A stretch of 63,977 nt of DNA from Octopus bimaculoides (lineage: Eukaryota). Positions 5,312 to 53,600 of the stretch are shown here, piece by piece. Under the pieces are notes generated by a model, which saw nothing but the letters and a program-made list of their open reading frames with translations, was not told where the DNA came from and did not search any database. The stretch is taken from positions 961,643-1,025,619 of the forward strand of contig NC_069009.1 in NCBI RefSeq assembly GCF_001194135.2, given 5' to 3'. Positions within the stretch are counted from its first letter, which is position 1; each line of letters starts with the position of its first letter. Both the position numbers and the translations under genes were made by a program.

Positions 5312-6691
5312 CTAATGAATGAGTCTGTGAGTAGTCAAGTGATCTATTTCAAAGAATGATTCACCACAGACATCACAACGATGTGATTTCACTCCTGAAT
5401 GAACACATTTGTGTCTACTTAAATGTCCCTTTTGAGTGAATGATTTACTGCAGATATCACAGTGATATGGCTTCTCACCTGTATGGATAAGCTTGTGTTT
5501 AGTTAAGCTAACTTTTATAGAGAATGATTTACCACAGATATCACAGTGATATGGTTTCTCTCCTGTATGAGTACGTTTATGTACAGTTACATTACTTTTT
5601 TGAGCGAATGATTTACTACAGATATCACATTGATATGGCTTCTCTCCTGTATGAGTAAGTTTGTGTGTAGCTAACTTATCTCTCACAGAGAATAATTTAC
5701 CACAGATATCACACTGAAAAGGTCTCTCGCCTGTATGAATAAGTTGGTGAGTAGTTAAGTCACTGTTTCGAGAGAATGATTTACTACAGATATTGCAATG
5801 ATATGGTTTCTCTCCTGTATGAATACGTTTATGTACAGTTACAGCACTTCTGTGAACGAATGATTTACCACATATATCACAATCATATGGCTTCTCTCCT
5901 GTATGAGTAAGTTTGTGTGCAGCTAAGTTAACTCTCACAGAAAATGATTTACCACAGATGTCACAGTCATATGGTTTCTCTCCTGTATGAATACGTTTAT
6001 GTACAGTTACAGCACTGCTTTGAGTGAATGATTTACCACAAATATCACAATGATATGGCTTCTCTCCTGTATGAGTAAGTATGTGTGTAGTTAAAGTTGC
6101 TTTTAGGGAGAATGCTTTCCCACAAGTATCACAGCAATATGGCTTCTCTCCTGTATGAATACGTATGTGTTTAGCTAAGTTAACTTTCACAGAGAATGAT
6201 TTATCACATATATCACAATGATATGGCTTCTCTCCTGTATGAGTAAGTTTGTGTGTCGATAAATGCTGCTTTTGGGAGAATGATTTTCCACAAATATCAC
6301 AGTGATGCAGCTTCTCTTCTGTATGAATACGTTTGTGAAGAGTAACTTTACTACTTTTAGAGAATGGTTTACCACAGCTATCATAATGATACAGGTTCAC
6401 TCCTGAATGAACATGTTTGTGTACAGTTAGGCTGCTTTTGTGAGTAAATGATTTACCACAGACATCACAGCGATATGGTGGCTCTCCAATATGAATGAGT
6501 TTATGAATATCCAATGCATTATTTGTAGAGAATGATTTACCACAGATATCACAATGATATAGTTTTTGTCCCATGTGAATATTTCTGTGAATAGTTAGGT
6601 TACCTTTTTTAGAGAATGATTTTTCACAGATATCACAGTGGTATACAGATTTTCCTCTTTCTTTGGGCATCTCTGCAGGTAAAACTAACAA
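5312..6691 (-). CDS. C2H2 zinc-finger protein ZF2 (16 fingers, one degenerate); start uncertain
   Basis: 459-aa ORF of C2H2 repeats ending [12 protein letters not shown]. The ORF start is a non-ATG codon; an in-frame ATG (MPKERGKS) lies just inside. Confidence 0.92.
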
Positions 6692-11669: not shown

Positions 11670-12827
11670 TCACTGGTATTGTTTCTTTCTCATATGACTG
11701 CGCTTGTGAGTACTAAAGCTGCTTCTATGAGCAAATGATTTACCGCAGATATCACAATGATATGGCTTCTCACCTGTGTGAGTACGCGTGTGAGTACCAA
11801 AGCTGCTTCTATGAGCAAATGATTTACCGCAGATATCACAATGATATGGCTTCTCACCTGTGTGAGTACGCTTGTGATCAATCAAAGTACCATATCCAGA
11901 GAATGATTTACCACAGGTATCACAGCAATATGGCTTCTCTCCTGTATGAACACGTTTGTGAATAGTTACGTGACTAGATGAAGAGAATGATTTCCCACAG
12001 ATTTCACACTGATATGGGTCCTCGCCTGAATGAATGCCTTTATGAACAGTTAAGGCACGTCCATAATAGAATGATTTACCACAGATATCGCAATTATATG
12101 GTTTCTCTCCTGTATGAATGTATTTGTGTCTATTTAGGTAACTATTTTCATAGAATGATTTACCACAGATATCACAGCGATATGGCTTTTCTCCTGTATG
12201 AATGCGTTCGTGAGTAGTCAAATGATAAATATCATGAAATGATTTACCACAGAGGTCACAGTGTAGATATTTTCCTCTTATGTGAAGCTGTTTGTGTGTC
12301 GTTAAATTAGAAGCTTGCGAGAATGACTTACCACAGATATCACAGAAATAGGGCGTCTCACCTGTATGAATACGTCGGTGAGTAGTCAAGTTACCTCTCC
12401 GAGTGAACGACTTACCACAGATATCACAGTTATGTGGTTTTTCACCTGTATGAATACGTTGGTGACGGACTAAGTCATTTTTTCCATTGAATAATTTACC
12501 ACAGCTATCACAATGATATGGCTTCTCTCCCGTATGAATACGTCGGTGAGTGCCTAAGCTACCTTTCTGAGTTAATATTTTACCACAGATATCACATTCA
12601 AATGTTGTTTTGCCCTTTTCATTCTTTACATCATTAGAAAAATCAATTTTTTCAGCTTGTTTTTTACATTCATCTTCACACCTATATAATTCATTTTCCA
12701 TAATCTTCCTTTCTCTTGTCACAGTACACAAATATTTTCCTTCCTTTTGTATATTGCTCTTAACAAATATTTCTACTGATATATCTCCGTCATTAATAAT
12801 CTTCGTTAATATCTGAAGATGCTGCAA
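11670..12827 (-). CDS. C2H2 zinc-finger protein ZF3 (11 fingers); likely start MENELY at 12701
   Basis: 385-aa ORF. The acidic/basic leader [27 protein letters not shown] is shared with ZF4 and ZF5. Confidence 0.92.
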
Positions 12828-16450: not shown

Positions 16451-17681
<1,231 letters not shown>

Positions 17682-20006: not shown

Positions 20007-20426
<420 letters not shown>

Positions 20427-20596: not shown

Positions 20597-21040
<444 letters not shown>

Positions 21041-23050: not shown

Positions 23051-26000
23051 ATATGTAACTCAATCTATTGAGAATAATATATTAGATATAACTGTTACGT
23101 ACTCAAAAACAAGGTATACATACACTTGTACGTGCGTTCATGTATCCGGATACTATGCATGGAGATATATCTATATCTGTACGTTTGCTTAAGGATATGT
23201 GGATATATAAGTGTATGTATATGGTTACTAGGGTGTAACTGTAAGATATGTGTGGAGATGTATGCGTATATTCATGTATGTCGAGCTATGCATAACGAGG
23301 TGTACATGTATACGCTCTAGTATGTTGGCGAATGTATCTGGATGAGGGCGTGTCTATATACACACATATACATATACTGTGACTTCTAAGTTAGTGTATA
23401 GATAAGTTTATAAAGCTAAGAATTTTTAGTGGTGTGTTTGGGATGGTCACTGACCATTCATCACAATGATATCAAATTACAACCTTAATCTACATTTCAA
23501 CGAGTGGTCTAGCTAAAAAATTATTTGTGACCACTAACATCTCATCCAAGCCAACATCCTGTTCTCAATTCTATAGCATTTTATCTCTTATTATACTTTG
23601 TTTTTATTTCCTTTGTTACTTTATTCCAGTTTTGCTAAATCTTATTTATATATGTATCTAACTTTATTATCCTTATTTTTACTTTTATTTTTATACTTTA
23701 TTTTTTACCTTTTTTCTTTTCTTTCTATCTTATACACGCCAGTTAAATATAAACTCAATCCAATCTATTTAACATTCACTCTATGCTGAATAGTGGTACA
23801 GTATGGGCAGATTTTTGAAATCCAACGAACCTCTATACAAATATACCTTTTTAAAGGGATGTGATAAACCTATTATAATGGATAATACTAAGTGTACTTT
23901 TTCTTTTGTGATGTAATCTTTGGACTAAAAATTGTTGGCTGCTGAAGAGAGTTTTAAACCATCTTTTATATCAATAATATACCTATGGTGATGTAATAAC
24001 AGATTGTTTATAAAGTTTGAAACATGTGTACCACGATATCCTTTGTGTTTTGTTTTCAATTTATGTTTGATATATTCTCTCACCTCTGCCACTATCTGGC
24101 ATATACAGTCGCTTTTACACCGACTTCAAAAAATCCACGCCCCCACATATATAAAAAAAATTATAAGATTTTACGGAAAGCGACGATTTTTTTTTTGACA
24201 AGTATAGTACTCATCGAAATTTAGCCAAAATACATTGCAGAGTGTGTAGATTGCAATTACATTTGAATCGAATATATTTAAAAACAAATTGGCGGGCTCG
24301 TACCCATATATATTAGCACACGTCACATATATATATATAGAAAATGAAACGGTGATCTTTCGATACCAACCCTCCTTTTTGCTTGAGCGTTTGTTTACAT
24401 CAATTCGGCAATTTCCGTAATGAAAGAGGGAAAGGATGTTAGTCAGCGACAGCTTTGATTTGTTAGGTAGCAGACAGCAGGGACCCCCTCTCTTAAGAAC
24501 ACATGCCAGTTATCTCTCTTTGCACCTCTCTTAAGAACACATGCAAATTATCTCTCGCTTTCTCTCTCTATCTCTAACAGTAACCCTAACATTAACCCAT
24601 ATATATTAGTACACGTAACATATATATATAGAAAATGAAACTTGAAACTATTTTCCTTTTCCCTTCAATTTGCGATATAATCTTAATTAAGACACTCTGA
24701 AAAGTATGTATATGTGAATGTATGTATGTATAGGACTGTGTGAGCCCGTATGTATGATATGTATTTTTATGTATGTATACGACTCCTCTTACTACGTACA
24801 CGCCTACCATGTTTGCATTCTATTGGTGCAGAATCTTACATCATAAAATAGTGAACAGCAAATGTCACGCAATACTAGTTCTCGGGTAAATGTTTTTTTT
24901 TTCTTTCCTGTTGGGCAGGGCCGGATTAAGACTCATCGAGGCCCTAAGCACTTATAAGATTTTGGTAGATTATGTAATTCAAAATATAAACAATAACAAA
25001 CGATAATATATATATATATATTGAAAACGAAAGAATTTCTGGAGATGTACTCACATAGCAAGTGACTTAATCTTAGATCGTGTGCTGGTGTTTATAAGCC
25101 ATTTCAGAAACACACAAAAACAGTTAGATACACTAATGAAGCAATACGCAGGAAAGAGAAGGCGTCATAAGAAAACTTACGTTAAAAATAACATGCACAC
25201 GATTTTTTTTCTCAATAGAAGTAAATTCCAAAGTAAACGTTTCTAGTAGAGAAGTAGGAGAGAACAGGACATAACTACAGAGAAATCTACGGATGCACAT
25301 ACGCACATAATAGAGAAAAATGAAACAATTATGGACGACTTGCTCCGAAACACCACCGAGTGGGGAACGCTTCTCAAAAATAACCTGCAGTTGTTTCCTT
25401 CAAAATTCCTACATGCTCGAAATGTACATACATCAAGGTATATTTGTAGAAAATTTCACGAAAAAATATTCATTTTCCTGGAGTTTAAGTGGACTCTGTT
25501 GGAATTTCCGAAAATTGTCCCCCACCCCCATTCCAAAACACTTTCACTAAAAGCCCATCTTTTTTGTATGTGTATGAAAGTGGCTAGGGATCATTCGTAT
25601 TTGCTTTATTTGATTCTGTAAAATCCAGATACGCATACACTTCTCCGTGCTTAATTAGCTTAGGCGAAGCAAAAATAATTTTTCGTTTTCAGAGTTGACT
25701 ACATCCGATATAAAAGAAAGTCAGATGTTTGAACTGTTCAGCATCATAAATTTCCCAGAGTTAAATAAAACTGTTGGACACTCTATCTGTACCTACTTAA
25801 TCTTCAGTGTAGAATTTACATATATACACACACACAAAATTGTGTACGCGCAACCATAAGGCTACCTTTCCACAAAGATTTCCTTAAAAAAATTCTTGTG
25901 GCCAAATATTGTTATGTTATTTATTCATGTATGCAGTTTTAATTTACAGTGGATCGCTTGAAATAATTAAGAAAAAGAATGTTAATTAGCTTATTTCAAT

Positions 26001-26294: not shown

Positions 26295-27192
26295 ATGATG
26301 GCCGTTTGGTACCTGCTCTGCTCTTTGTCTGCAATATTTTGTAAGTTTTATTTTTTTTTTATTCTATTTTTTTCCATAACTTATTTTTGTTAAGGCAAAC
26401 CTACTCAGGTGCACAGAGGTCTGGAATGGGTCACTCACATAAGTTGGATTTTCTTTGTTTTGACAAGGATTTTTCCAATTTTGTTTTCACCACAGCTTTA
26501 GAAATGATGCATTTTATTGGAAGAAATTTTTGGAAAATTTATGATTTTCCACCACAATCCAACTTATAAACTATCTACCTCATTAACAACTTATATACAG
26601 AACCTCAGGTCCCAAAACATTCCCTAGTTGATTAACAGTGAGCCATCACACCCACCCCATACAACACTAATCTTGGCATTGTTTATAAGAATCACCCACT
26701 ATCTTTCAAAACCACAACCCCTCATTATTTAATAAATTCTCAGATGCAATCCTCTCATGTAAACACAGATCCTATTCATTGTTTGCTGATTATGTTAAAT
26801 CTATGTAATTCCTTGATTACGATTAACCTTAAGTTACAACTTAGTTGCACTAGTGACATATCACTTCCACTAATACCACCTCCCCCATTCTAAATATTTC
26901 CTTAAGATTACCTTTACACATTCCTGCTACCCAGCACATACCCCTTTACAAAGGACCCCGTCCTCATACTTTGAATTCTTACCTGATCATCTTAGTACTT
27001 CCTACTCCTACTTTTACTACCAACTCCCTCTATTTACTCATACATGTCTACATACCTCAGTACTTTCATGTGCCACCGACCCATCTTCCTTTTTCAGATT
27101 TCCCCTTTGCTACACTACTAGCATCTGTAAACTTTTGTTTTCATCTTTTACAGGTTTGACAAGTGCAAACACTTATAAAATCACCCAAAGTG
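26295..27192 (+). CDS. Ig-family gene C, partial: signal-peptide exons 26295-26340 and 27154-27192
   Basis: Spliced MMAVWYLLCSLSAIF-C-LTSA-NTYKITQS-G. Both donors are GTAAGT, phase 1, and the exons are homologous to exons 1-2 of genes A and B. No adjacent Ig exon is visible; it may lie in the 28823-29777 gap. Confidence 0.75.
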
Positions 27193-29930
27193 GTAAGTAA
27201 ATTCACAAACCTTTTTTTTCTCCTTTTAAACTAGACACTATCTTTTCAGTTCTGTCTTCTATTTCTTTCTCTTAACTCATAGCTTTTAGTCAGTTTTGCT
27301 TTTTGGTTTCTTAAAATGTTTTTATTTTGACCATTGAGAAAGGCTAAAGAGCCAGAAACTCACATCAGGGAATGCACTGGAGCAGGGGTTTTCAACCAGG
27401 GTCATGATGGCTTGTGGAGATTCATATAGGATGGCCACCTTCATTCTTGCCATGGATCCAACAAGCCACAGCATTGTGGTGAGCGCCATTCCATGCATTG
27501 GCAAGACTTCTATTCCTTGATGACCTTTCTAACACCCACCACTTTACAACATGTAGTGGCTGCTTTTCTTTATTGCACCACCACTGAATTGGTTACCATG
27601 TAGCTGCGATTATGATAGTCATTCTAAATAGGATTGTGGTTATGATGTTTGTCATCATCATTCAATGTCCATGTTTCATGCAGAATTCGTTGCCCCTTTT
27701 TAATGCCAAACATTTTACAGAGTACTGGAGGCTTTTTTTACATGGCACCAACATTAGTAAGTCGCCAAGTAACTGTGAAGGCAAAGAAAGTGGAAGGAAA
27801 AAGCCCTGACTGAAGAGCATACCAGGTGTCGAGAGGTTAAAATAAGTGGGGTGGGTGTAATTGGATAGAGACATGGTTTAATCAGACATACACCCACGTC
27901 TGATGAAACCATGTCTCAGTAAACATAAATCTCATTAAGTTCAATCTCGTTAGGTTAAGTGTAATAAGATGTTTAATTTATTTTGATAATCTATTTTGCA
28001 CATTTTACCTCTTAATTTCCATGGCAAAAATATTAACCCTTTAGCATTCAAATTACTCAGTCAAATGTAATGCTNNNNNNNNNNNNNNNNNNNNNNNNNN
28101 NNNNNNNNNNNNNNNNNNNNNNNNNNNNNNNNNNNNNNNNNNNNNNNNNNNNNNNNNNNNNNNNNNNNNNNNNNAAAAGTTTTAGATTCAGGCATGATTT
28201 TGTTGCCTCATAACTTCTAGAAAAATGGATACTTTTCAATGAAACTTTCAACAAACAATCTCTTAGATCATACACATTGAGCGTATGTAAAGATTTGTTG
28301 GAAAAAAAAATTTTCCGAGAGGAGTTTCGGAAAATTCACACGACCCGACATTTCATAACTTCTCAGAATTTTCGTAACTTTCAGGAAAATGGGTATTTTT
28401 TAAGGAAATTTTACACAAATACCTTTCAAACAGCGTAGATGACGATTACAAAGACATCTGGGCATAACTACAGGGTTTTACCCCCTAGACTTTAGGAGGT
28501 CATAACTTTCAGAAAAATGAATATTTTTTAATGAAATTTTCTATGCATATAGTATTTTGGTAAATATGTTACTTACGTGGAAAAAATGCCATGTTCTAGA
28601 ACCGCAATTTCCGCTCTTGTCTACCTGTAATTAAAAAAACAAAAATCAAGAGATTTGGCTGCTATTTCTAGCATGTGTAGAGACCTCCTATGCTTAACTT
28701 CATGCGCAAATAACAGATTGTTCTCGTGGGTGTATACGGGGTGGAAGGGGGGAGGGTCACATGGCGGAGATGTAAACGGAACCCTACCCCGCTTTAGTTT
28801 TTTTTTTTTCTTTTTTAACAGANNNNNNNNNNNNNNNNNNNNNNNNNNNNNNNNNNNNNNNNNNNNNNNNNNNNNNNNNNNNNNNNNNNNNNNNNNNNNN
28901 NNNNNNNNNNNNNNNNNNNNNNNNNNNNNNNNNNNNNNNNNNNNNNNNNNNNNNNNNNNNNNNNNNNNNNNNNNNNNNNNNNNNNNNNNNNNNNNNNNNN
29001 NNNNNNNNNNNNNNNNNNNNNNNNNNNNNNNNNNNNNNNNNNNNNNNNNNNNNNNNNNNNNNNNNNNNNNNNNNNNNNNNNNNNNNNNNNNNNNNNNNNN
29101 NNNNNNNNNNNNNNNNNNNNNNNNNNNNNNNNNNNNNNNNNNNNNNNNNNNNNNNNNNNNNNNNNNNNNNNNNNNNNNNNNNNNNNNNNNNNNNNNNNNN
29201 NNNNNNNNNNNNNNNNNNNNNNNNNNNNNNNNNNNNNNNNNNNNNNNNNNNNNNNNNNNNNNNNNNNNNNNNNNNNNNNNNNNNNNNNNNNNNNNNNNNN
29301 NNNNNNNNNNNNNNNNNNNNNNNNNNNNNNNNNNNNNNNNNNNNNNNNNNNNNNNNNNNNNNNNNNNNNNNNNNNNNNNNNNNNNNNNNNNNNNNNNNNN
29401 NNNNNNNNNNNNNNNNNNNNNNNNNNNNNNNNNNNNNNNNNNNNNNNNNNNNNNNNNNNNNNNNNNNNNNNNNNNNNNNNNNNNNNNNNNNNNNNNNNNN
29501 NNNNNNNNNNNNNNNNNNNNNNNNNNNNNNNNNNNNNNNNNNNNNNNNNNNNNNNNNNNNNNNNNNNNNNNNNNNNNNNNNNNNNNNNNNNNNNNNNNNN
29601 NNNNNNNNNNNNNNNNNNNNNNNNNNNNNNNNNNNNNNNNNNNNNNNNNNNNNNNNNNNNNNNNNNNNNNNNNNNNNNNNNNNNNNNNNNNNNNNNNNNN
29701 NNNNNNNNNNNNNNNNNNNNNNNNNNNNNNNNNNNNNNNNNNNNNNNNNNNNNNNNNNNNNNNNNNNNNNNNNNNNNNTTATTATTATTGTGTTGTATTT
29801 TTTACAGAAACCCACCGTTTTCGTATCAGGCTTTCACCTTTTTACATACTATTGTTTGTTTGTTGTAAAATTAGTGTAACTCAAATAATTTCTGTTGTTT
29901 TTCAGTTTCAGAAAATAATTTTTACAGATC

Positions 29931-32456
29931 ATGGAAATTCTAAAGTTCTTCTGTTTGTCTGCAATATTTTGTAAGTCTTTGTCGTTCTTTTTCTTTATAA
30001 TTCACTCTTATTTCTTTATTGCCCACAAGGGGCTAAACATAGAGGGGACAAACAAGGACAGACAAAGGGATTAAGTTGATTAAATCGACCCCGGTGCGTA
30101 ACTGGTACTTATTTAATCGACCCCCGAAAGGATGAAAGGCAAAGTCGACCTTGGCAGAATTTGAACTCAGCCAATGAAATAGTCATGTAGTAACGCCTTA
30201 CAGTCATTTTCCTGAAAGTCACGAGGAAACAAATCCAACTCTTGTGAATTTTCCAAAACTATTCCTCACCCTCAGAATGAATTTTTCCTCTAAAAATTGA
30301 GATGTAATCAATCTGTACCATCTAGGGCATATTTGTAGAAAATTTCTTTAAGAAAATATCCATTTTTCAGGCACTTGTGAGTAAGCAAAATCAAGTAGGG
30401 CACACTTGTGTAGGTATGCCACTTCACTTAGAAACAAGGAATGTATAGTGACAGGAAGGGTTTCTGGCTGTAGAAGAGAAAAGACAGTCTTTGTGACATG
30501 CAAGATGAAATGGTAAATGTTAAAACAATGGCAGACATCAGCATTGTGATACAATCGCCATTCTATTGTGATCATAACCGTATTGACTCGTAGCATAGTC
30601 TTGTCAGTTTATATATATTTTTTATTGTTAATACAAAAGATGTTCATGAAATACAAGATTCAATCTTCTTGTGTATTACAGGTGTAGAACATCTTCATCA
30701 GAAATTCAATATTTAGGCTTATGTTTCACATCAATGCAGATTCATGTTGCTGTGTTTCATTCTTCATCCATCTCACCAGGTGTGAGAGGGTGGATGTGGC
30801 CAGTTTGAACATAAAACAATAATATTTGGGCCACATATGGCTTGGTTAACCCTTTGGCAATAAAATTACTGTCTAATGTACTGTTCATTTATTCACATTG
30901 TTTTGAATTCTATCATCTGAAAATCAAAAACTTTGTTTTCATCTTTTACAGGTTTGACAAGTGCAAAAGTTTATATCACCAAAAGTGGTAAATAGATTCA
31001 CAAACCATTTTTTCTCCTTTTAAACTAGACACTATCTTTTCAGTTCTGTCTTCTAATTCTTTCTCTTAACTCAGCTTTTTTAGTCACTGTTTTACTTTTT
31101 GGTTTCTTAAAATGTTTTTATTTTGACCATTGAGAAAGGCTAAAGAGCCAGAAATACACATTGGGGAAGCACTAGAGCAGGGGGTTTCAACCGGGGTCAT
31201 ACACCCATGTCTGATAAAATCATGTCCCAGTAAACATAAATCTCATTAAATTAAAACTTGTTAGGCTAAATGTAATAAGATGTTTAACTTATTTTGATAA
31301 TCTATTTTGCACATTTTACCTCTTAATTTCCATGACAAAAATATTAACCCTTTAGCATTCAAATTACTCAGTCAAATGTAATGCTTATTTATTCACAATG
31401 TTTTGAATGAATCACACATTATCTCAGCTTTGAGATTTCAATGATGTGATGCTTTATTTCCAGAATGACATTGTAGGTTAGATGGGAGAGGTCAGATATG
31501 GCTAGTTTGAACATCAGACAAGTAGAGTATTTGGGTCTGATATCGTTAGTTTAAATGCTAAAGGGTTACATTTGGATGTGAGATGAAGGCATGGCTGTGA
31601 TTAGGAACTTTTATTTCCAAGCGTATAATTTAAGGTCCAGTCCCCCTGTATGGCACCTTGTTTAAGTGTCCTCCACTATAGCCCCAGGCCAACAAAAGCC
31701 TTGTGAGTGGATTAGGTAGATAGGAGCTAAAAGGAGCCCATTGTGTGATGTGTGTATATATGGGATATTATAGCCTTGTTTGGAAACAGATGGAGGTTAG
31801 TGACAGGAAGAGTATCCTACTGTTGAGAATGAAAACTCTTATCCACGAAACATGGAACAGTGGGCATCATAATGATGCTGATTTTCTGTCTTGATGAATT
31901 TTTAGTTGAATGAATTGACCCCAGTACTTATTCTACTGGTCTCTTTTGCTGAACCACTAAGTTACTGGGACATAGACACACCAACACTAGTTGGCAAGTG
32001 GTGGCGGAGAACAAACACACATATAAATAAACAACAGGCTTCTTTCAGTTTCCATCAACCAAATCCACACACAAGGTTTTGGCTCATCTGAGGCTGTAGT
32101 AGAAGACACTTTCCCAAGGTACTGTGTAGTGGGACTGAACCCAGAACCATGTGATTGGGAAGCAAATTTCTTATCTGATTTCTTTATTTCAGGAAATGTT
32201 GTGCTCAATGGAAATGTCACTCTTATGATAACAATACCAAATATGAGACGACCAGTGGTTTGGAGGTGTCACAATTATAAATATGAATGTGACAGGACGT
32301 GTGCTAACGGCACTAACTATAAAGTTACGCAGAGTGGAAATCATTCCACTCTGTGGATTCGAAATGTGACAAAGGAATGTTTGACTTGGAGATTCGACGA
32401 TGACAACCTTCAAGGTGGAACAATTCATTTGAAGATAAACAGTAAGGAAATGATTC

Positions 32457-32488
<32 letters not shown>

Positions 32489-33776
32489 TCCTTTATTGGC
32501 CATTGAGGGTTGAGACAGTGGAAAATATTTAGGATGGTACAGTGTAGGTTTTAGCATGTAAAAAGTCATAAAATAAATGAAAGGAAGTCAAAAAAAGTAA
32601 ATTCCCCAATAGAGGTGTGTACCTCTCCAATTTACAGGTACACACTGAGAGAAGGCCCATTCACTCAAGCAATGCTCACCTATCAACAAACTGCTTGGAA
32701 GGCGGCACTTCCCTCTCCACCCATACCTATAATGGTGATACTTAAAAAAGTTAAATTAAATTTTTTTAAGAATTGAACATACAAATTTCCCAATAAGTAA
32801 GTGGTCATATTATTTATATCCTACATCAAACTACAGTACCTTTGATTTGGCTGCCATCATTGAAAGATTGAAAATACTTCTCAAATTTTATGCACTATCT
32901 TCTATAAGTATTTAATTTTGTTCACATTCTTTTTCATGATGCGTTTGGTGTAGACACCGATCAAGTCTACAGTCAAACACTTACAAAGCTCAATTCAGTT
33001 CAATTTAAAAGCATAGATAAGCTATGCATTGTAAGCCACACCATGATTTGCAAAATAATTTATCTTACGTTATGCTTCACCCCTGATATGCCTTTTTCTT
33101 TTACTCATATTAAAATTGCTGCCTCTAGGGCAGCGGACTTGCGGTCATAGGATCGCGGTTTCGATTCTTCTGAAGAGGAACATATAATCTTTTAGATATA
33201 GTAATCTAGGATACTGATGTGTGTTGACCCTTTTGTTATTAGATTTTTGTTGAAATACACTGCCTTTGTTTCAATTAATCTTTAAATAAAGAATTTAGTA
33301 AAATAACTTCATCACTTCTAAGTTGCTGTTTGGAACATAAATTACTATGAAATTTTGATGGAAGCTTTAAATTTAGATCATTTTAAACCTATTGTTACTT
33401 TATTTCTGTGGAAATACACTGGCTTTGTTTCAATTAATTTTGAAAATATAAAATAATTTAGTAAAATAATTTTGTCATCATTAAACTGGTTTTTCGAACA
33501 TAAATTAACAGGAAATTTTGATGGAAGGTTTCAATTTGGATCATTTAAAAAAAAAAGAGGGCTTTGCACCATCGAAACAAGGGCAGTCTTGAGCAAGTTG
33601 GAATGCAAAGGGTATATAAATGATATGTTTTATTGTTGATCTTTGTATGTGATACAACACCAATATCTGTGGCATATGATGATATCACACTGAAATCTTT
33701 TGCAGATGGTGGAACCAGCAGCCTCAGAACCAGCTTCATCTTTGTCATTGGGATTATAATTGCTGTCATCATTTAA
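29931..33776 (+). CDS. Ig-family gene A: 131-aa signal peptide + single Ig-like domain + GPI-signal-like tail
   Basis: Exons 29931-29970, 30952-30987, 32193-32441 and 33706-33776 are all GT-AG, phase 1, and sum to 396 nt. Protein: MEILKFFCLSAIFCLTSAKVYITKSGNVVLNGNVTLMITIPNMRRPVVWRCHNYKYECDRTCANGTNYKVTQSGNHSTLWIRNVTKECLTWRFDDDNLQGGTIHLKINNGGTSSLRTSFIFVIGIIIAVII. Confidence 0.85.
31348..31565. mobile_element. piggyBac-like MITE (218 bp)
   Basis: TTAA|CCCTTTAGCATT...AATGCTAAAGGG|TTA. Partial copies at about 2080-2290, 12855-13150, 28035 and 30780-30910. Confidence 0.75.
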
Positions 33777-35933: not shown

Positions 35934-37124
35934 TTACAGTGATATGACTTCTGTATGAAATTGTTTGTGCCTAGTCAACAGATTATTTTGAGAAAATGAT
36001 TTACCACAGATATCACAATGATATGGCTCCTCACCTGTATGTGTACGTTTGTGAACATTTAAGTTACCAACTCCAGAGAAGGATTTACCACAGATATCAC
36101 AGTGATATGGCTTCTCTCCTGTATGAATACGCTTGTGAGTAGTTACGTTACTAGTTTCAGAGAAGGATTTACCACAGATATCACAATGATATGGCTTCTC
36201 TCCTGTATGAATGCGTTTGTGACGAATCAAGGTATTATTTTGAGAAAACGATTTACTACAGATATCACATTGATATGGCTTTTCTCCGGTATGACTGCGT
36301 TTGTGAATAGTTACGTGACCATTTTCAGAGAATGATTTACCACAGATATCACAGTGATATGGCTTCTCTACTGTATGAACACGCTTGTGAGTAGTCACGG
36401 TACTAGCTTCAGAGAAGGATTTACCACAGATATCACAATGATACAGCTTCTCTTTGGTATGAACATACTTGTACTTAGTTAAGTTACCAGTTTCAGGGAA
36501 GGATTTACCACAGAAAACACACTGATATGGCTTCTCTCCTGTATGAACACGCTTGTGCTTAGTTAAGTTACCAGTTTCAGAGAAAGATTTACCACAGATA
36601 TTACAGTAATATGGCTTCTCTCCTGTATGAACACGCTTGTGCTTAGTTAAATTACCAGTTTCAGAGAAGGATTTACCACAGATATCACAATGATATGGAT
36701 TCTCTCCTGTATGAATACGTTTGTGACTAGTTAAGATACTATGTCTAGAGAATGATTTACCACAGATATCACAATGATATGGCTTCTCTCCTGTGTGGAT
36801 GCGTTTGTGATCAGTCAAGTGATAATTTCGAGAGAAGGATTTACCACAGATATCACAGTGATATGGCTTCACGCCTGAATGAATGTATTTGTGAACAGTT
36901 AAGTTGTGTCCATAAGAGAACGACTTACCACAGATATCACAATGATATGGCTTCTCTCCTGTGTGAACACGTTGGTGAATGACTAAGTCAGCTTTCCGAG
37001 AGAATAATTTACCACAGGTATCACAATCATATGATATTTTGCCCTTTTCATTCTTTTCCTCATCAGGAAAATCCATTTCTTCAGACTCTTTTTTTATATT
37101 CATCTTCACTCCAATATAATTCAT
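35934..37124 (-). CDS. C2H2 zinc-finger protein ZF5 (13 fingers, one degenerate); leader frameshifted relative to ZF3/ZF4
   Basis: 396-aa ORF. The ancestral ATG at 37131 is out of frame because of a T7 run at 37089-37095. Ends HTEVISL*. Confidence 0.88.
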
Positions 37125-43961: not shown

Positions 43962-46900
43962 TTAAATGATGACAGCATTTATAATCCCGATGACAAAGAT
44001 GAAGTGGGTTCTGAGGCCGCTGGTTCCTTGTGCACCATCTGCAAAAAAATTTCAGTGTGATATCACTATATGTCACAGATATTGGTGTCGTATCACATAT
44101 AAAGATCAACAATAAAACATATCATCTATATACCCTTTTCATTCCAACTTGCTCAAGACTGTGGCCATGCTGGAGCACCGCCTTTATAGTCTAGCAAATC
44201 GACCCCAGGACTTATTCATTGTAAGCCTAGTACTTATTCTATCGGCTCACTTTTGCCGAACCGCTAAGTTACAGGGGCGTAAACACACCAGCATCGGTTG
44301 TCAAGCAATGCTGGGGGGGGGGGCGCAAGCAGACACACAAGCACACACATACATATATATACGTATACATATACGACGGGCTTCTTCCAGTTTCCGTCTA
44401 CCAAATCCAATCACAAGGCTTTGGTCGGCCCGAGGCTATAGTAGAAGACACTTGTCCAAGGTGCCACGCAGTGGGACTGAACCCGGAACCATGTGGTTGG
44501 TAAGCAAGCTACTTACCACACAGCCACTCCTGCACCTATAAGCTACTTACCACACAGCCACCCCTGGAATTATTAATATTATAAATTATTTCCTTACTGC
44601 TTATCTTCAAATCGGTTGTTCCAAAGTTGATATTGTAGTCCGCAAACATCCAGGTCAAACAATCCTCTGTTACTTTTGTTATCGAAAGAGTAGAAGTATT
44701 CCCACTCTGCATAACTTTATAGTTAGTCCCGTTAGCACATGTCCTGTCACATTCATATTTATAATTGTTGCACCTCCAAACCACTGGTCTTCGCATATTT
44801 GGTACTGTAATATTGAGGGTGGCTTCTCCATTGAGCTTAATATTTTCTGAAATAAAGAAATCAGATAAGAAATTTGCTTCCCAAAAACATGGTTCTGGGT
44901 TCAGTCCCACTGTGCAACACCTTTGCCAAGTGTTTTCTACTACAGCCTCGACTATCATAATTGCAGCTACATGGTAATCAAATGAGTGGTGGTGCAGTAA
45001 AAAAAATGCACCCACTACACTTTGTAAAGGGGTCAGTTTTAGGAAGGTCATCAAGAAATAGGAACCTTGACAATGCATGGAATGGAGCTTGCCACAATGT
45101 TGGCTTGTTGGATCCATGGCAAGATTGAAGGTGGCCATTTTATAAGTACCCTCACACAGGCCATCTCGACCCTGGTTGAAACCCACTGCTCCAGTGCTTC
45201 CCTGGTGTGTATTTCTGGCTCTTTAACCTTTCTCAATGGTCAAGTTAAAAATTTAAAGAAACCAAAAAGCAAAATAGTGACTAAAAAAGCTATGAGTTAA
45301 GAGAAAGAAATAGAAAACAGAACTGAAAAGATAGTGTCTAGTTTAAAAAGGAGAAAAATGTTTGTGAATCTATTTACCACTTTGGATAATTTCATAAATC
45401 CCTGCACTTGCCAAACCTGTAAAAGATGAAAACATTAAGTTTTGATTTTCAGATGATATAATTCAAAACAATGTGAATAAACAAACAGTACATTAGACAG
45501 TAATTTGATTGCCAAAGGGTTAAGCCAGCCATATCTGGCCCAAATATTACATAGGCGCAGGAGTGGCTGTGTGGTAAGTAGATTGCTTACCAACCATATG
45601 GCTGCGGGTTCAGTCCCACTGCGTGGCACCTTGGGCCGACCAAAGCCTTGTGAGTGGATTTGGTAGACGGGAACTGAAAGAAGCCCGTCGTATATATTCA
45701 ATAAACTGGGATATTATGGCAGGAAGAACATCTGATTGTATATAAAGAAAACTCTGATCACAAGTATGGAAAATTAGGTGTTCAAACAATGATGATGGTG
45801 AAAAGATAACCCTGAAATCTTTCATATGACAAAACTGTCGCTAACATTGGTTTATCTGTTTATTTCAGGTCCAGTTGTGTTAAGAGGAAATGTCACTTTT
45901 CATACTGAAGAAATAGCCAATATGAAAAGGTCTATTATCTGGGAAAATGGTCGTTGCAGTCTCAGATATGCCAATACATGCTGCAACAATGGTAACTATG
46001 AAGTTAGCCACACTGGTAACATTTCTACTCTTTGGATCCAAAGTGTCTCTCAGGAAGATATGACTTGAGTTTTTCGAAGTGACAATCTCTGCTATGCGAA
46101 AATTACTGTGGTGACAAAAAGCAAGGAAATTACTTCTGCTAATAATAACAACAATAATTTCATCAATCCCCAAGAAGATGAAAGACAATACCACAGAACA
46201 ATCAATCATCTCTTGTATATGGATGATCTTAAAACTGTATGCTGCAAATGATAAACAAATGGAAACTTTATTACAGACAGTACATGGATTTACCAAAGAA
46301 ATAAATATGAAATCTAGCTTGGAAAAATGTACCAACGCAACCTTGAAAAGAGGAAAACTAGTTAAGAGTAGCAACATCACACTAGATAAAGCAAATGAAG
46401 TAAGAGAATTAGACCAAAGCCTTCCCACCAGAAATACATGAAGTTAAAAAAAAAATACAAAGCCCAGTCCTGGCTAAGAAGGAACATATTCAGAGACATG
46501 ACTGAGTTGGGACCTATATACACTGGAAGCTATGCCAACACTATGGAATAACAACAGAAAAAGATGTTATAAGCTCACCCCAGAAAAGGTCACAGAAAAT
46601 GAGAAAGTAACCATATTCTGGGATATGTCAATATGCACAGATAGAGAATTCAAGGCCAATAGACCAGATATAGTTGTCAGAGATCACCAAGATCATCAGA
46701 AATCACCATTGTAGACATATGTTGAGAGGAATTCTTCGGGGTTTGGAGAACTTACCTTTGGAAACATGGGTGTTTCATTCAACATCCTTAAACAACTCTT
46801 ATTCAGGGACCTTTTGAGCAGGATGGGCTACTCAACCTGAAGAAAATTCTAACTGGGCCCCACTTGCAAGGTCATGCACTGTTCATCTTGATATGAGATC

Positions 46901-48067
46901 ACCATGTCGTGCACATATGGTTGTGATGCAAGTGCTTGGTGTACCCTTATCAGACGGGTAGTCATGATGGGTATAATGGGCTTTGTATATTTTACCCCAG
47001 TGTCACTTTGATGGCATGCACTGCTCTCTCACTCAATAATAATAATAATAATAATGATAATCATCACTGAACAAATATTTTTATAATACTTAAGCAAAAT
47101 TAAAAATTTGTAACTTTCAGGGTTTTCTTCTGTGTTTTTTTCTTTTTTCTTTTTTTCTTTCTTTTACCTGTTTTGAATTAATAGATCTTCATAATAATCC
47201 CTGCTGAGATATATTCGTAGTTGACTGAATGGATTGGTTAGTTTCAGTCTCTAGGATCACCTGTCTATATTACAATTTATTTGTTGAACATCTGACATGT
47301 GGCGCACTTGTGCCCTTGTGCAGACAATGTTGATTTGATGGAAGGAGGGAGTTAATGTACAACTCACACATTTGATCCCTATAAGTAAATAATTTGTGCA
47401 GGGCTTCCAGTCAAAACTGCACACTGATATGTCATCTTTGACAGCAGATTCTGTTATATCTTCTACTATATAAATGCAAGTGTATGTGGTTATGTAGCTG
47501 TGTTTAGCCCCCAAAAGGCTGATTTTGGCCATTCGTTTTTGCATTACACACTCAAAAACCATAGGGGAAACCTTTTCAGTAAAAGTTTATTTATCACTTC
47601 ACGATTTGACAGAGGACACCACATAAGTTGGATTATCTCTGTTTTGATGGGTACTTTTCAACTTCAGCATTGGAGGCAGACATTAAATGATGATGATGAT
47701 GATTGTGTAGATTAGGATTATATCAGAAGTTAATATGGAAACAATTTGGTTGGCATGTACATATTAGTACTGACAAATTTCAAGTTTCATCTTGTAGATA
47801 TATGTGCTGTGTGTGAGCCTGCCATTTTTTTCCTTAAATAAATATTCAAAAACCTTTATTTCATTTTCATGTGTGTGGTGAAAAAACAATTTGAAAAATC
47901 CCTCTCAAAACAGAGAAAATCCAATTTATGTGGGTGACCAATTCCAGACTTCTGTTTACTTGTATAGTTATGCCTCAACAAGAATGAATTTTTAAGAAAA
48001 AAAAAAAAAAAAAAACAAACTTACAACATAATGCAGACAAACAACAGAAGAACTTTAGAATGTCCAT
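43962..48067 (-). CDS. Ig-family gene B: 135-aa paralog of gene A
   Basis: Exons 48067-48025, 45416-45378, 44846-44598 and 44038-43962 are GT-AG, phase 1, and sum to 408 nt. Protein: MDILKFFCCLSALCCLASAGIYEIIQSENIKLNGEATLNITVPNMRRPVVWRCNNYKYECDRTCANGTNYKVMQSGNTSTLSITKVTEDCLTWMFADYNINFGTTDLKISNGAQGTSGLRTHFIFVIGIINAVII. Confidence 0.85.
44135..44535 (-). mobile_element. Near full-length tRNA-headed SINE in intron 3 of gene B
   Basis: Head GGTGCAGGAGTGGCTGTGTGG...GGTTCAGTCCC, central TA/GT microsatellite and 3' body. The first about 25 nt of the head are tandemly duplicated. Confidence 0.88.
45869..46120 (+). pseudogene. Ig-family exon D (252 nt, phase 1-1) with in-frame TGA and GC donor
   Basis: CTAAC branch point and TTTATTTCAG acceptor. 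Reads GPVVLRGNVTFHTEEIANMKRSIIWENGRCSLRYANTCCNNGNYEVSHTGNISTLWIQSVSQEDMT*VFRSDNLCYAKITVVTK, then GCAAGGAAAT where A and B have GTAAGGAAAT. Confidence 0.78.
46160..46700 (+). mobile_element. R4/Dong-clade (RLE) non-LTR retrotransposon fragment, internally deleted
   Basis: INHLLYMDDLK/LYAAND (RT YxDD), then HIQRHD*VGTYIHWKLCQHYG and IFWDMSICTDREFKANRPDIVV (RLE PD motif). It starts right after an (AAT)n tract. Confidence 0.85.
46715..47060 (+). repeat. Interspersed repeat ending in an (AAT)n tail, possibly a Dong-related 3' end or SINE
   Basis: Ends GCATGCACTGCTCTCTCACTC-AATAATAATAAT. Confidence 0.5.
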
Positions 48068-50044: not shown

Positions 50045-50640
50045 GTGATTAATTGGCATCAAAATTCTGCTGGCATTTCAAAAGTGTTACATGAAAGTTA
50101 CCAGCATATTGCTGAAAAATTTCCTCGTTTCAAACGAATATTCCCTCAGACACTTTTTGTTGCTTTTAGACAGTATAAAAATATAAGAGAACTATTAACC
50201 ACTTCCTCTAACTCCAAAAACACTACCATTGGAGTTCCTTGAGCACTACTCCGTTAAAAACAGCCGCAGGAGAGGTGAGCCCTGTTCATCGTGCAACAAC
50301 ATGAGTCAAGGCAATTCCACCAGGAATCAACAGAAATGTTATGATTTCTACAGAAGATGAGACATGTAGAGATTCTCATTTGGTGTACGTGGCAGAATGC
50401 ACGAAACACGACTTGATTTATGTTGGTTGTACAACAGAACAATTAAACAAAAGATTCAATGGACGCAGATATGACGTCAGGCACAGTGGCAGTGGTTCGA
50501 TAGAACTTTCTGAACATTTTATTATGTCCAGTGGCTACAGTTTTGAGGAATACCTGAAAGTGCACATTCTCAGAAAAATTCTGAATCTACTACACTTTCA
50601 GTTCTCAAAATGCACGAGGACAAATTTCTCTTGAAATGCA
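50045..50640 (+). mobile_element. Penelope-like element fragment (GIY-YIG endonuclease region)
   Basis: IFPQTLFVAFRQYKNIRELL, then CRDSHLVYVAECTKHDLIYVGCTTEQLNKRFNGRRYDVRH...LSEHF, the VY-x-C...YVG-x-T...R pattern of PLE endonucleases. Confidence 0.82.
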
Positions 50641-53600
50641 CTGCCTTTGCTTCAATTAATTTTGGAAATAATGAGGAATTTAGTAAAATAACTACATTGT
50701 CATTTAGCTGTTGTTTGCAATATAAATTAACCTGAAATTTTAATGAATGGCATGGCTGTGTGGTAGGAAATTTGCTTCCCAACCACATGGTTCTGGGTTC
50801 AGTCCCACTGTATGGCAACTTGGGTATGTATCTTAAAAGAAGCCCATCATATATATGCATGTGTGTGTGTGTGTGTGTTTGTCCTCCACCACTAATTGAC
50901 AACTAGTGCTGGTCTGTTTATGTCCTCATTCACAAATGAGCTTTTTGACAAAAGAGACGGGGCCCTGAAAAAGTAAGTGCTGGGGTGCCCCAGCATGGCC
51001 ACTGACTAATGACTGAAACAAGTAAGGGATAAATGATGTGCTGGTGATGCCAACATTGCCTTTGATCTGCATGAGAGAACGGAACAGTTAAACACACAGA
51101 CACACACACACACAAACACACACACAGAAAAACACACACACAGAAAAACACACACACAGAAAAAAACACACACACACACACACAGAAACACACACACAAA
51201 CACACATCTAGAGAGAGAGAGAATCAACAGAAGATGAGATTCAGAGACGCTCAATACAGGCTATTCCACAATTAACTATCTATTTCAATGAAATCAAGCA
51301 AATTTTTAAAGAACTGACAAAATTTTATGCTTATTACTTATGGTACCAACGCAAATTTTACATCACAACTTTATTGAAAATTTTCAACATGTATTCCTGA
51401 AAAATTCAAATCTATCATCTGCATTGCTAAACACATTTGGAAATATTTCAGGAGTTACCTTCTGCATGGCTAACTAAATGCATTCTTTAAGTTCAGCTGA
51501 ACTATTGTTTCATCCGGGAGACGGAAATAGAGAAAATGACTGCAGGGAAATTGAGAAAAGCTGTCACGAAGAGATAAGGAATGAAAATAAAATTATTAAC
51601 AAAATTATAAATTTAATCACTTAACATAGGCACAGGAGTGGCTGTGTATTAAATAGCTTGTTTACCAACCACCTGGTTCCGGGTTCTTTTCCCATTGTGT
51701 GGTACCTCGGGAAAGTGTCTTCTACTATAGCCTCAGGCTGACCAAAGCTTTGTGTGTGAATTTGGTAGAGGGAAACTGAAAGAAGCCCATCATATATATC
51801 TATATATATATGCATGTGTGTGTATATGTTTGTGTGTCTGTGTTTGTTCCCCCAACATCACTTGACAACCGATGGTGGTGCGTTGATGTCCCTGTAACTT
51901 AGCGGTTTGGCAAAAGAGACCGATAGAATAAGTCCTGGGGTCAAAACCACGATCCTATGACCGCAAGTCCACTGCCCTAACCACTGGGCCATTGCGCCTC
52001 CACAAAGGATGAACTAATTATTAAGTAAACATATATTTCAACAAAACATGCACTAAATTGAATTTGATAGGTCTTATAGAGCCTAAACTTAGCATGAAAT
52101 TATTGCATTGATAATGTTGTTTATTCCGTCTCACTACTGTAAACAACATGTGGAGAACCACTACGCAAACTGGGCAGATATTCTTGTACATGTAAATTGT
52201 GTTTTTCTTTGAGAAATATTGGTAAAATTCTGCCAATAAGAAGAGACCATTAAGATTTTATTGAAATAGTGTCATATCTCAGAATTTCATGATTTATTTA
52301 CCTTCACATCTATTAAAAATGTGCCAAAACTCAAGTTTTTGTGGCCTGCTGTTTTGAATTTACCCAAGTCTGTGTCGTATCTTGCTCGACACTGTTATGT
52401 CCTGTATTATAACGGCGTAATTTGCCATCAGCCTGACTGGCCTAAACTGCATGACTGGCTGCAAATCGCATTCCACACATTGTGGCTGTCTACTATTTTT
52501 TAAGATTTTTTTTTTTCTACACACAGTATCATTATTTTATTTTCATTCTCCATTTTTTTTCTGCACATAATCATTATTATTTTTCTGTCGTTTTCATTTT
52601 CTATATAGGACAAAAAAAATTTTTTTTCTTTCAATTTCTTATCATAGAGCAATTACCATAATTTTTTTTCAACACTTAAGTATTATGCAGAATAACAGTA
52701 TGAAACACTGCAAAATCAACCTGTGACCCCTTTTGTAACGCTTTATCCCATTGTCTCTTCGAGTTCTACTTATTCTATTTTAAGCAAAACAAAAGAGACA
52801 CTTCGGATAAAAGGTCATTGTGAGATCACAGGCTGTTCGAGGAAAGAGTTTAAACAAAGACATGAAAATAACAATAATAAGAACACTCAGAGAGCACAAA
52901 CCTCCACCTGTAGTACGTAGTTTGCTTACGAACCACATGGTTCCGGGTTCAGTCACACACACACACACACAATGTGCACAAGCATTACAGTGTTGTCCTC
53001 CACTTTAAACTATTAATATGCCAGCTGCTGCTACTCTTGCCATGTTTTTCTGACCCAATAAAAGCTATAGATTATATTCTGTTTTTTTCCAAAGTTTTTT
53101 ATTACACTGTCTCACTAAGAGAAATTTAATACTAACTGAACCAATTACATTTCATGACTCATATACACACACACACACACACATACACAAAGTGTGCACT
53201 AGCATTAGATTGTTTAAATCCACTTTATACTACGAACTGTCAGCTGCTGCATTTAAAGTCTTGCCTTGTATTTGCCTTGTGTCAATAAAAGTTGTGTTGT
53301 GTTGGCACTCCGTCGCTTATGACGTCGAGGGTTCCAGTTGAGCCGATCAATGGAATTATATATACTGTGTGGCAAAAAGTGAAAATAAAGTGTTCATTTT
53401 TTTTTCCTTTACAACTGAAAGTGTTGGAGATTTCCAAAGAGGTTTGTTTTCTTTCTACAAAATGAAACTTGAAAGTGCATTTCTAAACAATATGAGAACC
53501 GAAATAACAGCCAAATCTCCAACAAACTCTCTTGATACACGCCCACACATATCTGTATGTGATGTACATACAACATAGAAGTTGGCACTCCGTCGCTTAC

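Follow-up and report, generated by a model that had tools for sequence, protein, structure and literature searches.

The stretch of DNA analysed here, called the window throughout, comprises 63,977 nucleotides of Octopus bimaculoides (RefSeq assembly GCF_001194135.2, contig NC_069009.1, positions 961,643 to 1,025,619 of the forward strand) and is a 100% match to chromosome CM046629.1 (GCA_001194135.2), N gaps included. Two genes within it, referred to as gene A (LOC106883299) and gene B (LOC106883582), encode small proteins with a domain that is predicted to be immunoglobulin (Ig)-like, and a decayed relative of this domain is termed copy C. A profile run against all six translated frames of the window recovers three domain exons and no others. 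The best explanation of the evidence as a whole, to which a probability of about 0.65 can be given, is that gene A produces a glycosylated, single I-set-like surface protein that is held by a glycosylphosphatidylinositol (GPI) anchor and acts through its Ig domain. The features of the locus are summarized in Table 1.

Gene A consists of four exons that splice into a stop-free open reading frame (ORF) of 131 amino acids (aa), with its ATG start at 29931 and a TAA stop codon ending at 33776. All three introns are GT-AG and of phase 1, with a good polypyrimidine tract at the acceptors. The protein (MEILKFFCLSAIFCLTSAKVYITKSGNVVLNGNVTLMITIPNMRRPVVWRCHNYKYECDRTCANGTNYKVTQSGNHSTLWIRNVTKECLTWRFDDDNLQGGTIHLKINNGGTSSLRTSFIFVIGIIIAVII) begins with the leader MEILKFFCLSAIFCLTSA, continues as KVYITKSG and has the C-terminal end NNGGTSSLRTSFIFVIGIIIAVII. 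It carries four N-glycosylation sequons (N33VT, N64GT, N75HS and N83VT), and the mature domain has four cysteines (C51, C58, C62 and C88). The four exons with their phase-1 junctions, the 131-aa ORF, the LTSA leader end, the four sequons and the GGTSS segment with its hydrophobic tail had been claimed in a preliminary description of this DNA, and all are present in the sequence as described. An exact-sequence look-up finds the ORF identical to XP_014789745.1 (RefSeq) and A0A0L8FHS3_OCTBM (UniProt), under the name ‘uncharacterized protein LOC106883299 isoform X3’ from O. bimaculoides; these records stem from two annotation pipelines. Because this exact protein is present in both NCBI and UniProt, the ORF is not a product of chance; the four exons are a real octopus gene, annotated yet uncharacterised. 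Gene B lies on the minus strand (48067-43962), is a 100% match to XP_014790131 and likewise has four exons, all of phase 1. Annotation of both genes in RefSeq and UniProt dates from 2015, and the gene model of the preliminary description is isoform X3, so that the description's term “hidden” was wrong.

Table 1. Genes, exons and repeats of the window (numbered from its first nucleotide)
Feature	Position	Strand	Description
Gene A exon 1	29931..29970	+	ATG and most of signal peptide MEILKFFCLSAIF; phase 1 end; donor GTAAGT
Gene A exon 2	30952..30987	+	Signal peptide end C-LTSA, predicted cleavage site, predicted Ig A strand KVYITKS-G; phase 1/1
Gene A exon 3	32193..32441	+	Ig-like body, predicted A' to G strands; 4 sequons; Cys51/58/62/88; symmetric phase 1/1
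Gene A exon 4 (coding part)	33706..33776	+	GPI-signal-like module: N109-G-G-T-S-S, spacer LRTS, 13-residue hydrophobic end FIFVIGIIIAVII, stop
Extra 5' coding exon, isoform X1 only	24862..24885	+	MSRNTSSR; donor GTAAAT
Alternative leader exon 1', isoforms X1/X2	26295..26340	+	MMAVWYLLCSLSAIF; belongs to duplicated 5' cassette
Alternative exon 2', isoforms X1/X2	27154..27192	+	C-LTSANTYKITQS-G; with downstream intron 90% DNA identity to exon 2 region
Gene B exon 1	48025..48067	-	Signal peptide
Gene B exon 2	45378..45416	-	LASAGIYEIIQS
Gene B exon 3	44598..44846	-	Ig-like domain; 70.6% aa / 79% nucleotide identity to gene A exon 3
Gene B exon 4 (coding part)	43962..44038	-	GPI-signal-like tail NGAQGTSGLRTHFIFVIGIINAVII
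Copy C, lone decayed domain exon	45869..46120	+	Antisense in gene B intron 1; 45% identity to A
C2H2 zinc-finger ORFs	347-1723, 5312-6691, 11670-12827, 16539-17681, 35934-37124	-	
C2H2 zinc-finger ORF	60112-62163	+	
Divergent histone H3/H4 pair	20007-20417; 20729-21040	-; +	
Conserved intron 3 start, gene A	32442-32490		
Conserved intron 3 start, gene B	44597-44560	-	
Conserved intron 3 start, copy C	46121-46160		
SINE-like copies	32129-32165, 44897-44860; also 4757, 13481, 34140, 37472, 44473, 45606, 50795		

In RefSeq isoforms X1 (P0048) and X2 (P0001) of gene A, exons 3 and 4 are unchanged but preceded by a second, upstream leader cassette, a tandem DNA duplication covering exon 1, the intron, exon 2 and the start of intron 2 (26295-28074 versus 29931-31385), with 90% identity between 27129-27405 and 30928-31200 and 94% between 27887-28074 and 31198-31385. 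Assembly gaps at 28075-28174 and 28823-29778 (956 N) separate the two leader cassettes. From the collinearity of the duplicated cassettes, the domain exon of the upstream copy would be expected in the 956-N gap, which may hide a further domain exon or gene copy.

Transcription of such a gene can be seen in Logan contig L003 (1067 nt, run SRR3401912), which contains the uninterrupted coding sequence of a 138-aa homologue, P0017, with 5' and 3' untranslated regions (UTRs); the run is an octopus meta-transcriptome (PMC11662614). Blocks of L003 align to exons 1, 3 and 4 of genes A and B and to the sequence downstream of them, and the introns are absent. The four-part architecture is thus transcribed and spliced in an octopus, and the splicing proposed in the preliminary description is matched by an intron-free, full-length homologue. 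No Logan contig encodes gene A (isoform X3) exactly, and an exact-protein record for P0004 was likewise not found. Contig L004 was rejected as transcript evidence for its intron-like sequence.

Comparison of exon 3 between genes A and B gives a Nei-Gojobori ratio of non-synonymous to synonymous substitution (dN/dS) of 0.30 overall, of 0.04 in a 30-residue core (PNMRRPVVWRC-NYKYECDRTCANGTNYKV; five synonymous changes and one non-synonymous) and of 0.40 elsewhere, values that come from one paralogue pair and form a crude, weak test. Judged by these ratios, A and B are under purifying selection, and the single comparison gives no hint of diversifying selection. Across the family, conservation peaks in the C' strand with its CxxxC motif, followed by strand E and the BC loop. 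It is very improbable that the exons are an annotation artefact or the relics of a decaying pseudogene without a functional protein. Decay does occur nearby, as copy C is dead, several family proteins in the databases are models cut short by donor read-through to …GKEITSANNNNNNSF, and assembly gaps flank exon 1. This reading is nevertheless largely refuted by the intact ORFs and canonical splice sites of both A and B, by the purifying selection on them, by the conservation of the domain across four octopod species, by the spliced homologous mRNA and by a very confident fold prediction.

The fold was predicted with AlphaFold2 (AF2) from an alignment of 33 family domains (A3), which gave a mean predicted local distance difference test score (pLDDT) of 96.2, a predicted template modelling score (pTM) of 0.87 and eight beta strands. 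In the 92-residue domain, the strands occupy residues 5-7, 17-22, 30-34, 37-41, 51-56, 59-64, 73-77 and 83-87 and follow the order A, B, C, C', D, E, F, G, with C'' absent. Another model, from a shallow 7-sequence full-length alignment, was poor (pLDDT 48.7) and was not used in the fold search. Foldseek returned 32 matches in the PDB with E<=1e-3, all of them Ig V-set or I-set domains. The best template modelling (TM) scores belong to obscurin Ig32 (0.69/0.71, root-mean-square deviation 3.3 Å) and titin I10 (0.66/0.67), followed by antibody VL and NCAM2. When the family profile is compared with PDB sequences, Ig domains of titin, obscurin, CD2, myotilin and CD79b stand on top (E 0.014-0.3). 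The highest-scoring Pfam model for gene A, I-set, reaches 13.4 bits (E 0.081), below its threshold of 23.7; across the 33 domains, I-set (9) and Ig_3 (4) are the sole recurrent Pfam families, all sub-threshold. Because the AF2 model, the Foldseek matches and the weak sequence signals concur, an Ig-like, I-set-like fold is supported as the predicted structure of the gene A domain. The single Ig-like domain that had been read from the strand pattern is therefore upheld in the model, which is a beta sandwich.

The likeness to I-set domains (obscurin Ig32, titin I10, NCAM2 Ig) comprises TM-scores of 0.62-0.71, a length of ~90 residues, the A-B-C-C'-D-E-F-G strand order without C'', an invariant C-strand Trp, an L-x-I-x-N-V-type E-strand motif and weak matches to the I-set hidden Markov model. 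The Trp is W49 (W32 in the domain alignment), lies in predicted strand C and is invariant in 33/33 domains. The octopus domain differs from I-set domains in failing the Pfam I-set gathering threshold, in having no B-F cysteines, in its family-specific E-C-D-x-T-C loop and WxC...EC pair, and in the shortening of the D-x-G-x-Y-x-C motif to (D/E)-C-L-T-W-x-F. By its modelled fold the domain would thus be an I-set-like member of the immunoglobulin superfamily (IgSF), whereas its sequence reaches the threshold of no curated Ig model and is without the hallmark disulfide.

The B-F disulfide is typical of I-set domains but not obligatory (e.g. many titin domains). In gene A, I38 and F93 stand at the canonical B and F positions, where no member in the 33-domain alignment has Cys. 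Four other cysteines are conserved instead, as the preliminary description had noticed. Within the motif E-C58-D-x-T-C62, C58 is found in 33/33 domains and C62 in 32/33, the abalone repeat described below included. C51 (W-x-C) and C88 (E-C-L-T-W) are both present in 15/33 domains and both absent from 14/33, with a mixed state in 4/33; a subfamily without C51 and C88 has an alternative Cys pair, F-C-D-x-x-x-C, in the F-G hairpin. The parsimonious pairing would be C58 with C62 in the C'/D crossover loop and C51 with C88, which would connect the E-F loop with the end of strand C.

By inspection, the N-terminus, with T-S-A after the hydrophobic core ILKFFCLSAIFCL, conforms to the -3/-1 rule for cleavage after A18, and the low-scoring 7-sequence AF2 model places a lone helix over the leader. 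Classical GPI signals consist of a small-residue cluster, a spacer and a terminal hydrophobic run, the layout laid down by Udenfriend and Kodukula and in Eisenhaber's big-PI rules. The C-terminus of gene A (N109-G-G / TSSLRTS / FIFVIGIIIAVII-stop) fits this layout by inspection, with small residues from omega to omega+2, a polar spacer of 5-7 residues, 13 hydrophobic residues and no cytoplasmic residues, and exon 4 encodes exactly this GPI-signal-like module. This layout agrees with the putative signal peptide and the GPI-signal-like end without cytoplasmic part that had been proposed. A hydrophobic end of 13-18 residues at the extreme C-terminus is shared by A, B, P0002, P0004, P0007, P0017 and P0023 (P0018: 11), whereas P0008, P0010, P0011, P0012, P0016, P0019, P0020, P0028, P0031 and P0036 have transmembrane segments of 14-27 residues and K/R-rich tails. 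This contrast favours the presence of a GPI signal in A and B, and the gene A protein is probably placed on the cell surface via a GPI anchor. The same gene and fold might also yield a protein that keeps its hydrophobic end as a type I anchor, or one that is secreted or shed, but this is unlikely. Some relatives are clearly transmembrane, the O. sinensis isoforms P0005/P0006 stop short (…SILSLG) and could be soluble, and omega+2 is Thr at one of the three candidate omega sites. In gene A, however, just 13 uncharged hydrophobic residues (F119-I131) follow an Arg, too few for a stable helix that crosses the membrane once, and no basic stop-transfer residue is present, in contrast to the longer segments and basic tails of the true transmembrane paralogues; the N-G-G-T-S-S cluster, spacer and hydrophobic end match the classical GPI layout.

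Relatives of gene A have been sought with several protein searches. A word-indexed search finds seven, all from Octopus and all ‘uncharacterized’, none with a precomputed Pfam domain, and only three proteins are added when the 33-domain profile is used in such a search. An exhaustive profile search of 1.84 billion representatives gives 33 matches, 26 of them with E<=1e-10. Source names were looked up for 30 of the 33, the weakest three being excluded: 24/30 come from O. bimaculoides, O. sinensis or O. vulgaris and 2/30 from Argonauta hians, and the others are three Logan contigs (P0017, P0037, P0038) and one protein of the abalone Haliotis rufescens. No squid, cuttlefish or Nautilus protein is among the 33 matches from these 1.84 billion representatives. 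The weakest three, the bacterial proteins P0034, P0035 and P0039 with repeated Ig-like/cadherin-like modules (E 8e-8 to 6e-4, summed over many repeats), were set aside as fold-level noise and are not members. When members are grouped at 50% identity, the species matched together yield ~30 clusters. In O. bimaculoides many paralogues share one 12-Mb chromosome (CM046629.1), and in O. sinensis one 21-Mb scaffold, and the closest cross-species pairs are only ~70% identical. As far as detected by these sequence searches, the family appears restricted to octopods (Octopus species and Argonauta), with a single weak relative in abalone, which agrees with the lineage-specific, multi-copy family that had been suggested.

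The abalone protein, P0032 (LOC124119024), has 562 aa and five repeats, each of them weak (E 3.8e-11 summed). It shares the C-x-x-x-C motif, the strand-C Trp and an STLTI..V..ADAGTW motif with the octopod domains. The protein is the only relative from outside the cephalopods and may point to an older, molluscan origin of the domain. Members of the family have 1-4 tandem domains, with an exon-2-like ‘xxYxIxQSG’ segment ahead of each. The preliminary description had applied the label of tiny GPI-anchored single-Ig proteins to the family as a whole, which does not hold: relatives occur with 1-4 domains, with a second domain type and with true transmembrane segments and cytoplasmic tails. This second module of ~90 residues (KPKIE..C.Y.V.A.CSLP.T.I.C...) follows the Ig-like domain in one or two copies in P0019, P0022, P0024, P0030, P0031, P0033 and P0036; it has its own Cys pattern, is unannotated and is unrelated to the Ig-like domain. 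No Pfam model matches the family above threshold, and its sequences are public but uncharacterised. Literature searches with LOC, XP and UniProt identifiers and for an octopus IgSF/GPI family found no description of it, so the family is undescribed in the literature searched. An orphan protein from an octopus visual-system atlas is a different, helical protein.

Taken together, these observations suggest the following mechanism for gene A. An 18-residue signal peptide, encoded by exon 1 and the start of exon 2 and cleaved after LTSA, would direct entry into the endoplasmic reticulum. Residues ~19-108 would fold as one I-set-like Ig domain bearing four N-glycans, with the A strand from exon 2 and strands A'-G from exon 3. 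In place of the B-F disulfide, the hydrophobic pair I38/F93 would pack on the invariant C-strand Trp49, and the domain would be stapled by a local C58-x-x-x-C62 disulfide and, probably, by a C51-C88 link. GPI transamidase would swap the exon 4 peptide for glycolipid at an omega site among N109/G110/G111, yielding a ~90-residue glycoprotein that is lipid-anchored in the outer leaflet. Having no cytoplasmic part, this product would act solely via its Ig domain, in cis or in trans, as a cell-surface recognition or adhesion molecule or a co-receptor, and transmembrane multi-domain members of the same family are possible partners or signalling subunits. Because the core is near-frozen (dN/dS 0.04) and the other surfaces vary (0.40), a shared binding face with a paralogue-specific periphery seems likeliest; the BC loop, C, C' and CxxxC would be the candidate common face, with paralogue identity carried by the variable surfaces (A, B, F-G and G).

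Several points weigh against this account. Every Ig-family sequence match falls under the curated threshold, and the transcript evidence comes from the homologue P0017, a transcript of gene A itself not having been retrieved. The GPI anchor is a rule-of-thumb reading of the C-terminus. The C51-C88 pairing is suggested by co-occurrence and strand topology, and by canonical Ig register C88 is ~3 positions off C51, so that the E-F loop must fold back. A recognition function is proposed from the architecture and by analogy with small GPI-linked Ig proteins.

Two broader interpretations of the family can be considered. It might form a combinatorial cell-surface code, in which the frozen BC-loop/C/C'/CxxxC face serves pairing and the variable faces provide specificity. 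This is a rather improbable proposal; if true, the family would have evolved independently as an octopus-specific counterpart to neuronal identity systems of the Dpr/DIP or IgLON type, beside the known protocadherin expansion of octopus. It is also doubtful that the family is an innate-immune, diversifying pattern-recognition repertoire (cf. snail FREPs and amphioxus VCBPs) and not one for cell-cell recognition or adhesion. Lineage-specific tandem expansion, with many paralogues on one chromosome or scaffold, would suit such a repertoire, as would the modest identity of even the closest cross-species pairs, suggesting fast birth-and-death evolution, and the alternative leader exons and many isoforms. 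However, the A/B dN/dS values (0.30, and 0.40 outside the core) carry no sign of positive selection, though a single pair tests this weakly; no ITAM/ITIM-type motif is seen by eye in the cytoplasmic tails of the transmembrane members, and there is no lectin or fibrinogen partner domain.

A GPI-linked recognition or adhesion protein with one Ig domain, the preferred reading of gene A, would be of familiar design. Thy-1/CD90 combines a signal peptide with one Ig-like domain (~90-110 residues) that bears several N-glycans, ends in a GPI signal and does not extend into the cytoplasm, and in the Thy-1 gene the Ig domain and the GPI signal are on separate exons, as is predicted for the octopus genes. 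It differs in keeping the canonical B-F disulfide and in being a single-copy vertebrate gene and not a large tandem family. Homology was rejected, as hhalign gave a probability of 0.1% and an E of 0.5 for the family profile against the human Thy-1 mature sequence; Thy-1 is thus an analogue of gene A by design and not a homologue. The squid brain protein Sgp-1, said to have been sought as a Thy-1 homologue by Williams, Tse and Gagnon in 1988, is reportedly ~100 aa long, heavily glycosylated and probably GPI-anchored. By this description it would resemble the predicted gene A product and is an obvious lead. With no squid protein among the 33 profile matches, any relationship to Sgp-1 would be below HMMER detection, or its sequence is outside the searched set. 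Ly6/uPAR proteins, the second class of very small GPI proteins, were rejected as relatives: the mature octopus domain has four Cys versus 8-10 in the LU pattern, an Ig fold is predicted and not a three-finger one, and there is no match to Pfam UPAR_LY6.

IgLON and Drosophila Dpr/DIP proteins resemble the family, on the octopus side by prediction, as multi-gene sets of small, glycosylated, often GPI-linked Ig proteins with pairwise surface binding. They differ in having 2-3 canonical Ig domains and in being conserved across phyla, whereas the octopus GPI forms would have a single divergent domain and appear octopod-restricted. NCAM and apCAM offer a parallel as IgSF adhesion paralogues with alternative anchor types. 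Octopuses have lineage-specific expansions of surface and regulatory families, such as protocadherins and C2H2 zinc fingers; the family described here would be a further octopod-restricted one, with a very divergent Ig-like domain. The domain also illustrates, in the predicted structure, how an Ig fold may do without the hallmark disulfide and use a CxxxC staple instead. Matched GPI-like and transmembrane members provide a tractable set for questions of binding and expression in the nervous system, suckers and haemocytes. If they are recognition molecules, they would give a new handle on cephalopod-specific cell identity; otherwise, they would be another uncharacterised small IgSF family.

The genomic setting of the two genes is a zinc-finger and histone cluster, as had been reported. 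The window holds six long C2H2 zinc-finger ORFs of up to 683 aa, with mutual DNA identity of ~75-82%, and a divergent H3/H4 pair. Genes A and B are convergent, with one of the minus-strand zinc-finger genes (35934-37124) in between. In O. sinensis, the locus of P0002 has a single family gene and no zinc-finger gene within 10 kb, and is therefore uninformative for synteny. The O. sinensis protein P0027 (‘zinc finger protein 239-like’) has zinc-finger repeats fused to the family domain and is probably a gene-model chimera of neighbouring genes.

Copy C has an in-frame TGA at 46066-46068 in place of the F-strand Trp and a GC donor instead of GT, it has lost the E-C-D Cys, and no leader or tail exons were found for it; on these features of its sequence it is a dead relic. 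Its subfamily is ‘TEE-I..W.N’, in which P0029 comes closest to it, and not that of A and B. Among paralogues, and also between species, intron 3 keeps the same start (gtaaggaaat...) followed by an (AAT)n microsatellite. Where a gene model reads past the exon 3 donor into this intron, its C-terminus takes the form ‘...GKEITSANNNNNNSF’ or ‘...KEITSANNNNNNSF’; this accounts for the C-termini of P0015, P0029, P0037 and P0038, which are thus truncated gene models.

Two repeats accompany the genes. An element resembling a short interspersed nuclear element (SINE), with the core GGGACTGAACCC..GAACCATGTG..TGGGAAGCAA, has at least nine copies in the window. In both A and B, one copy lies within ~30 nt 5' of the acceptor of exon 3, and this insertion would therefore be older than the A/B duplication. 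A second repeat of ~105 nt forms a tandem pair in intron 3 of gene A (33242-33341 and 33402-33504) and has a single copy at 50624-50726. The same repeat, at 80-83% identity, ends the 3' UTR of the octopus contig L003 (962-1067), and what remains of the UTR is collinear with positions 43774-43528, downstream of gene B.

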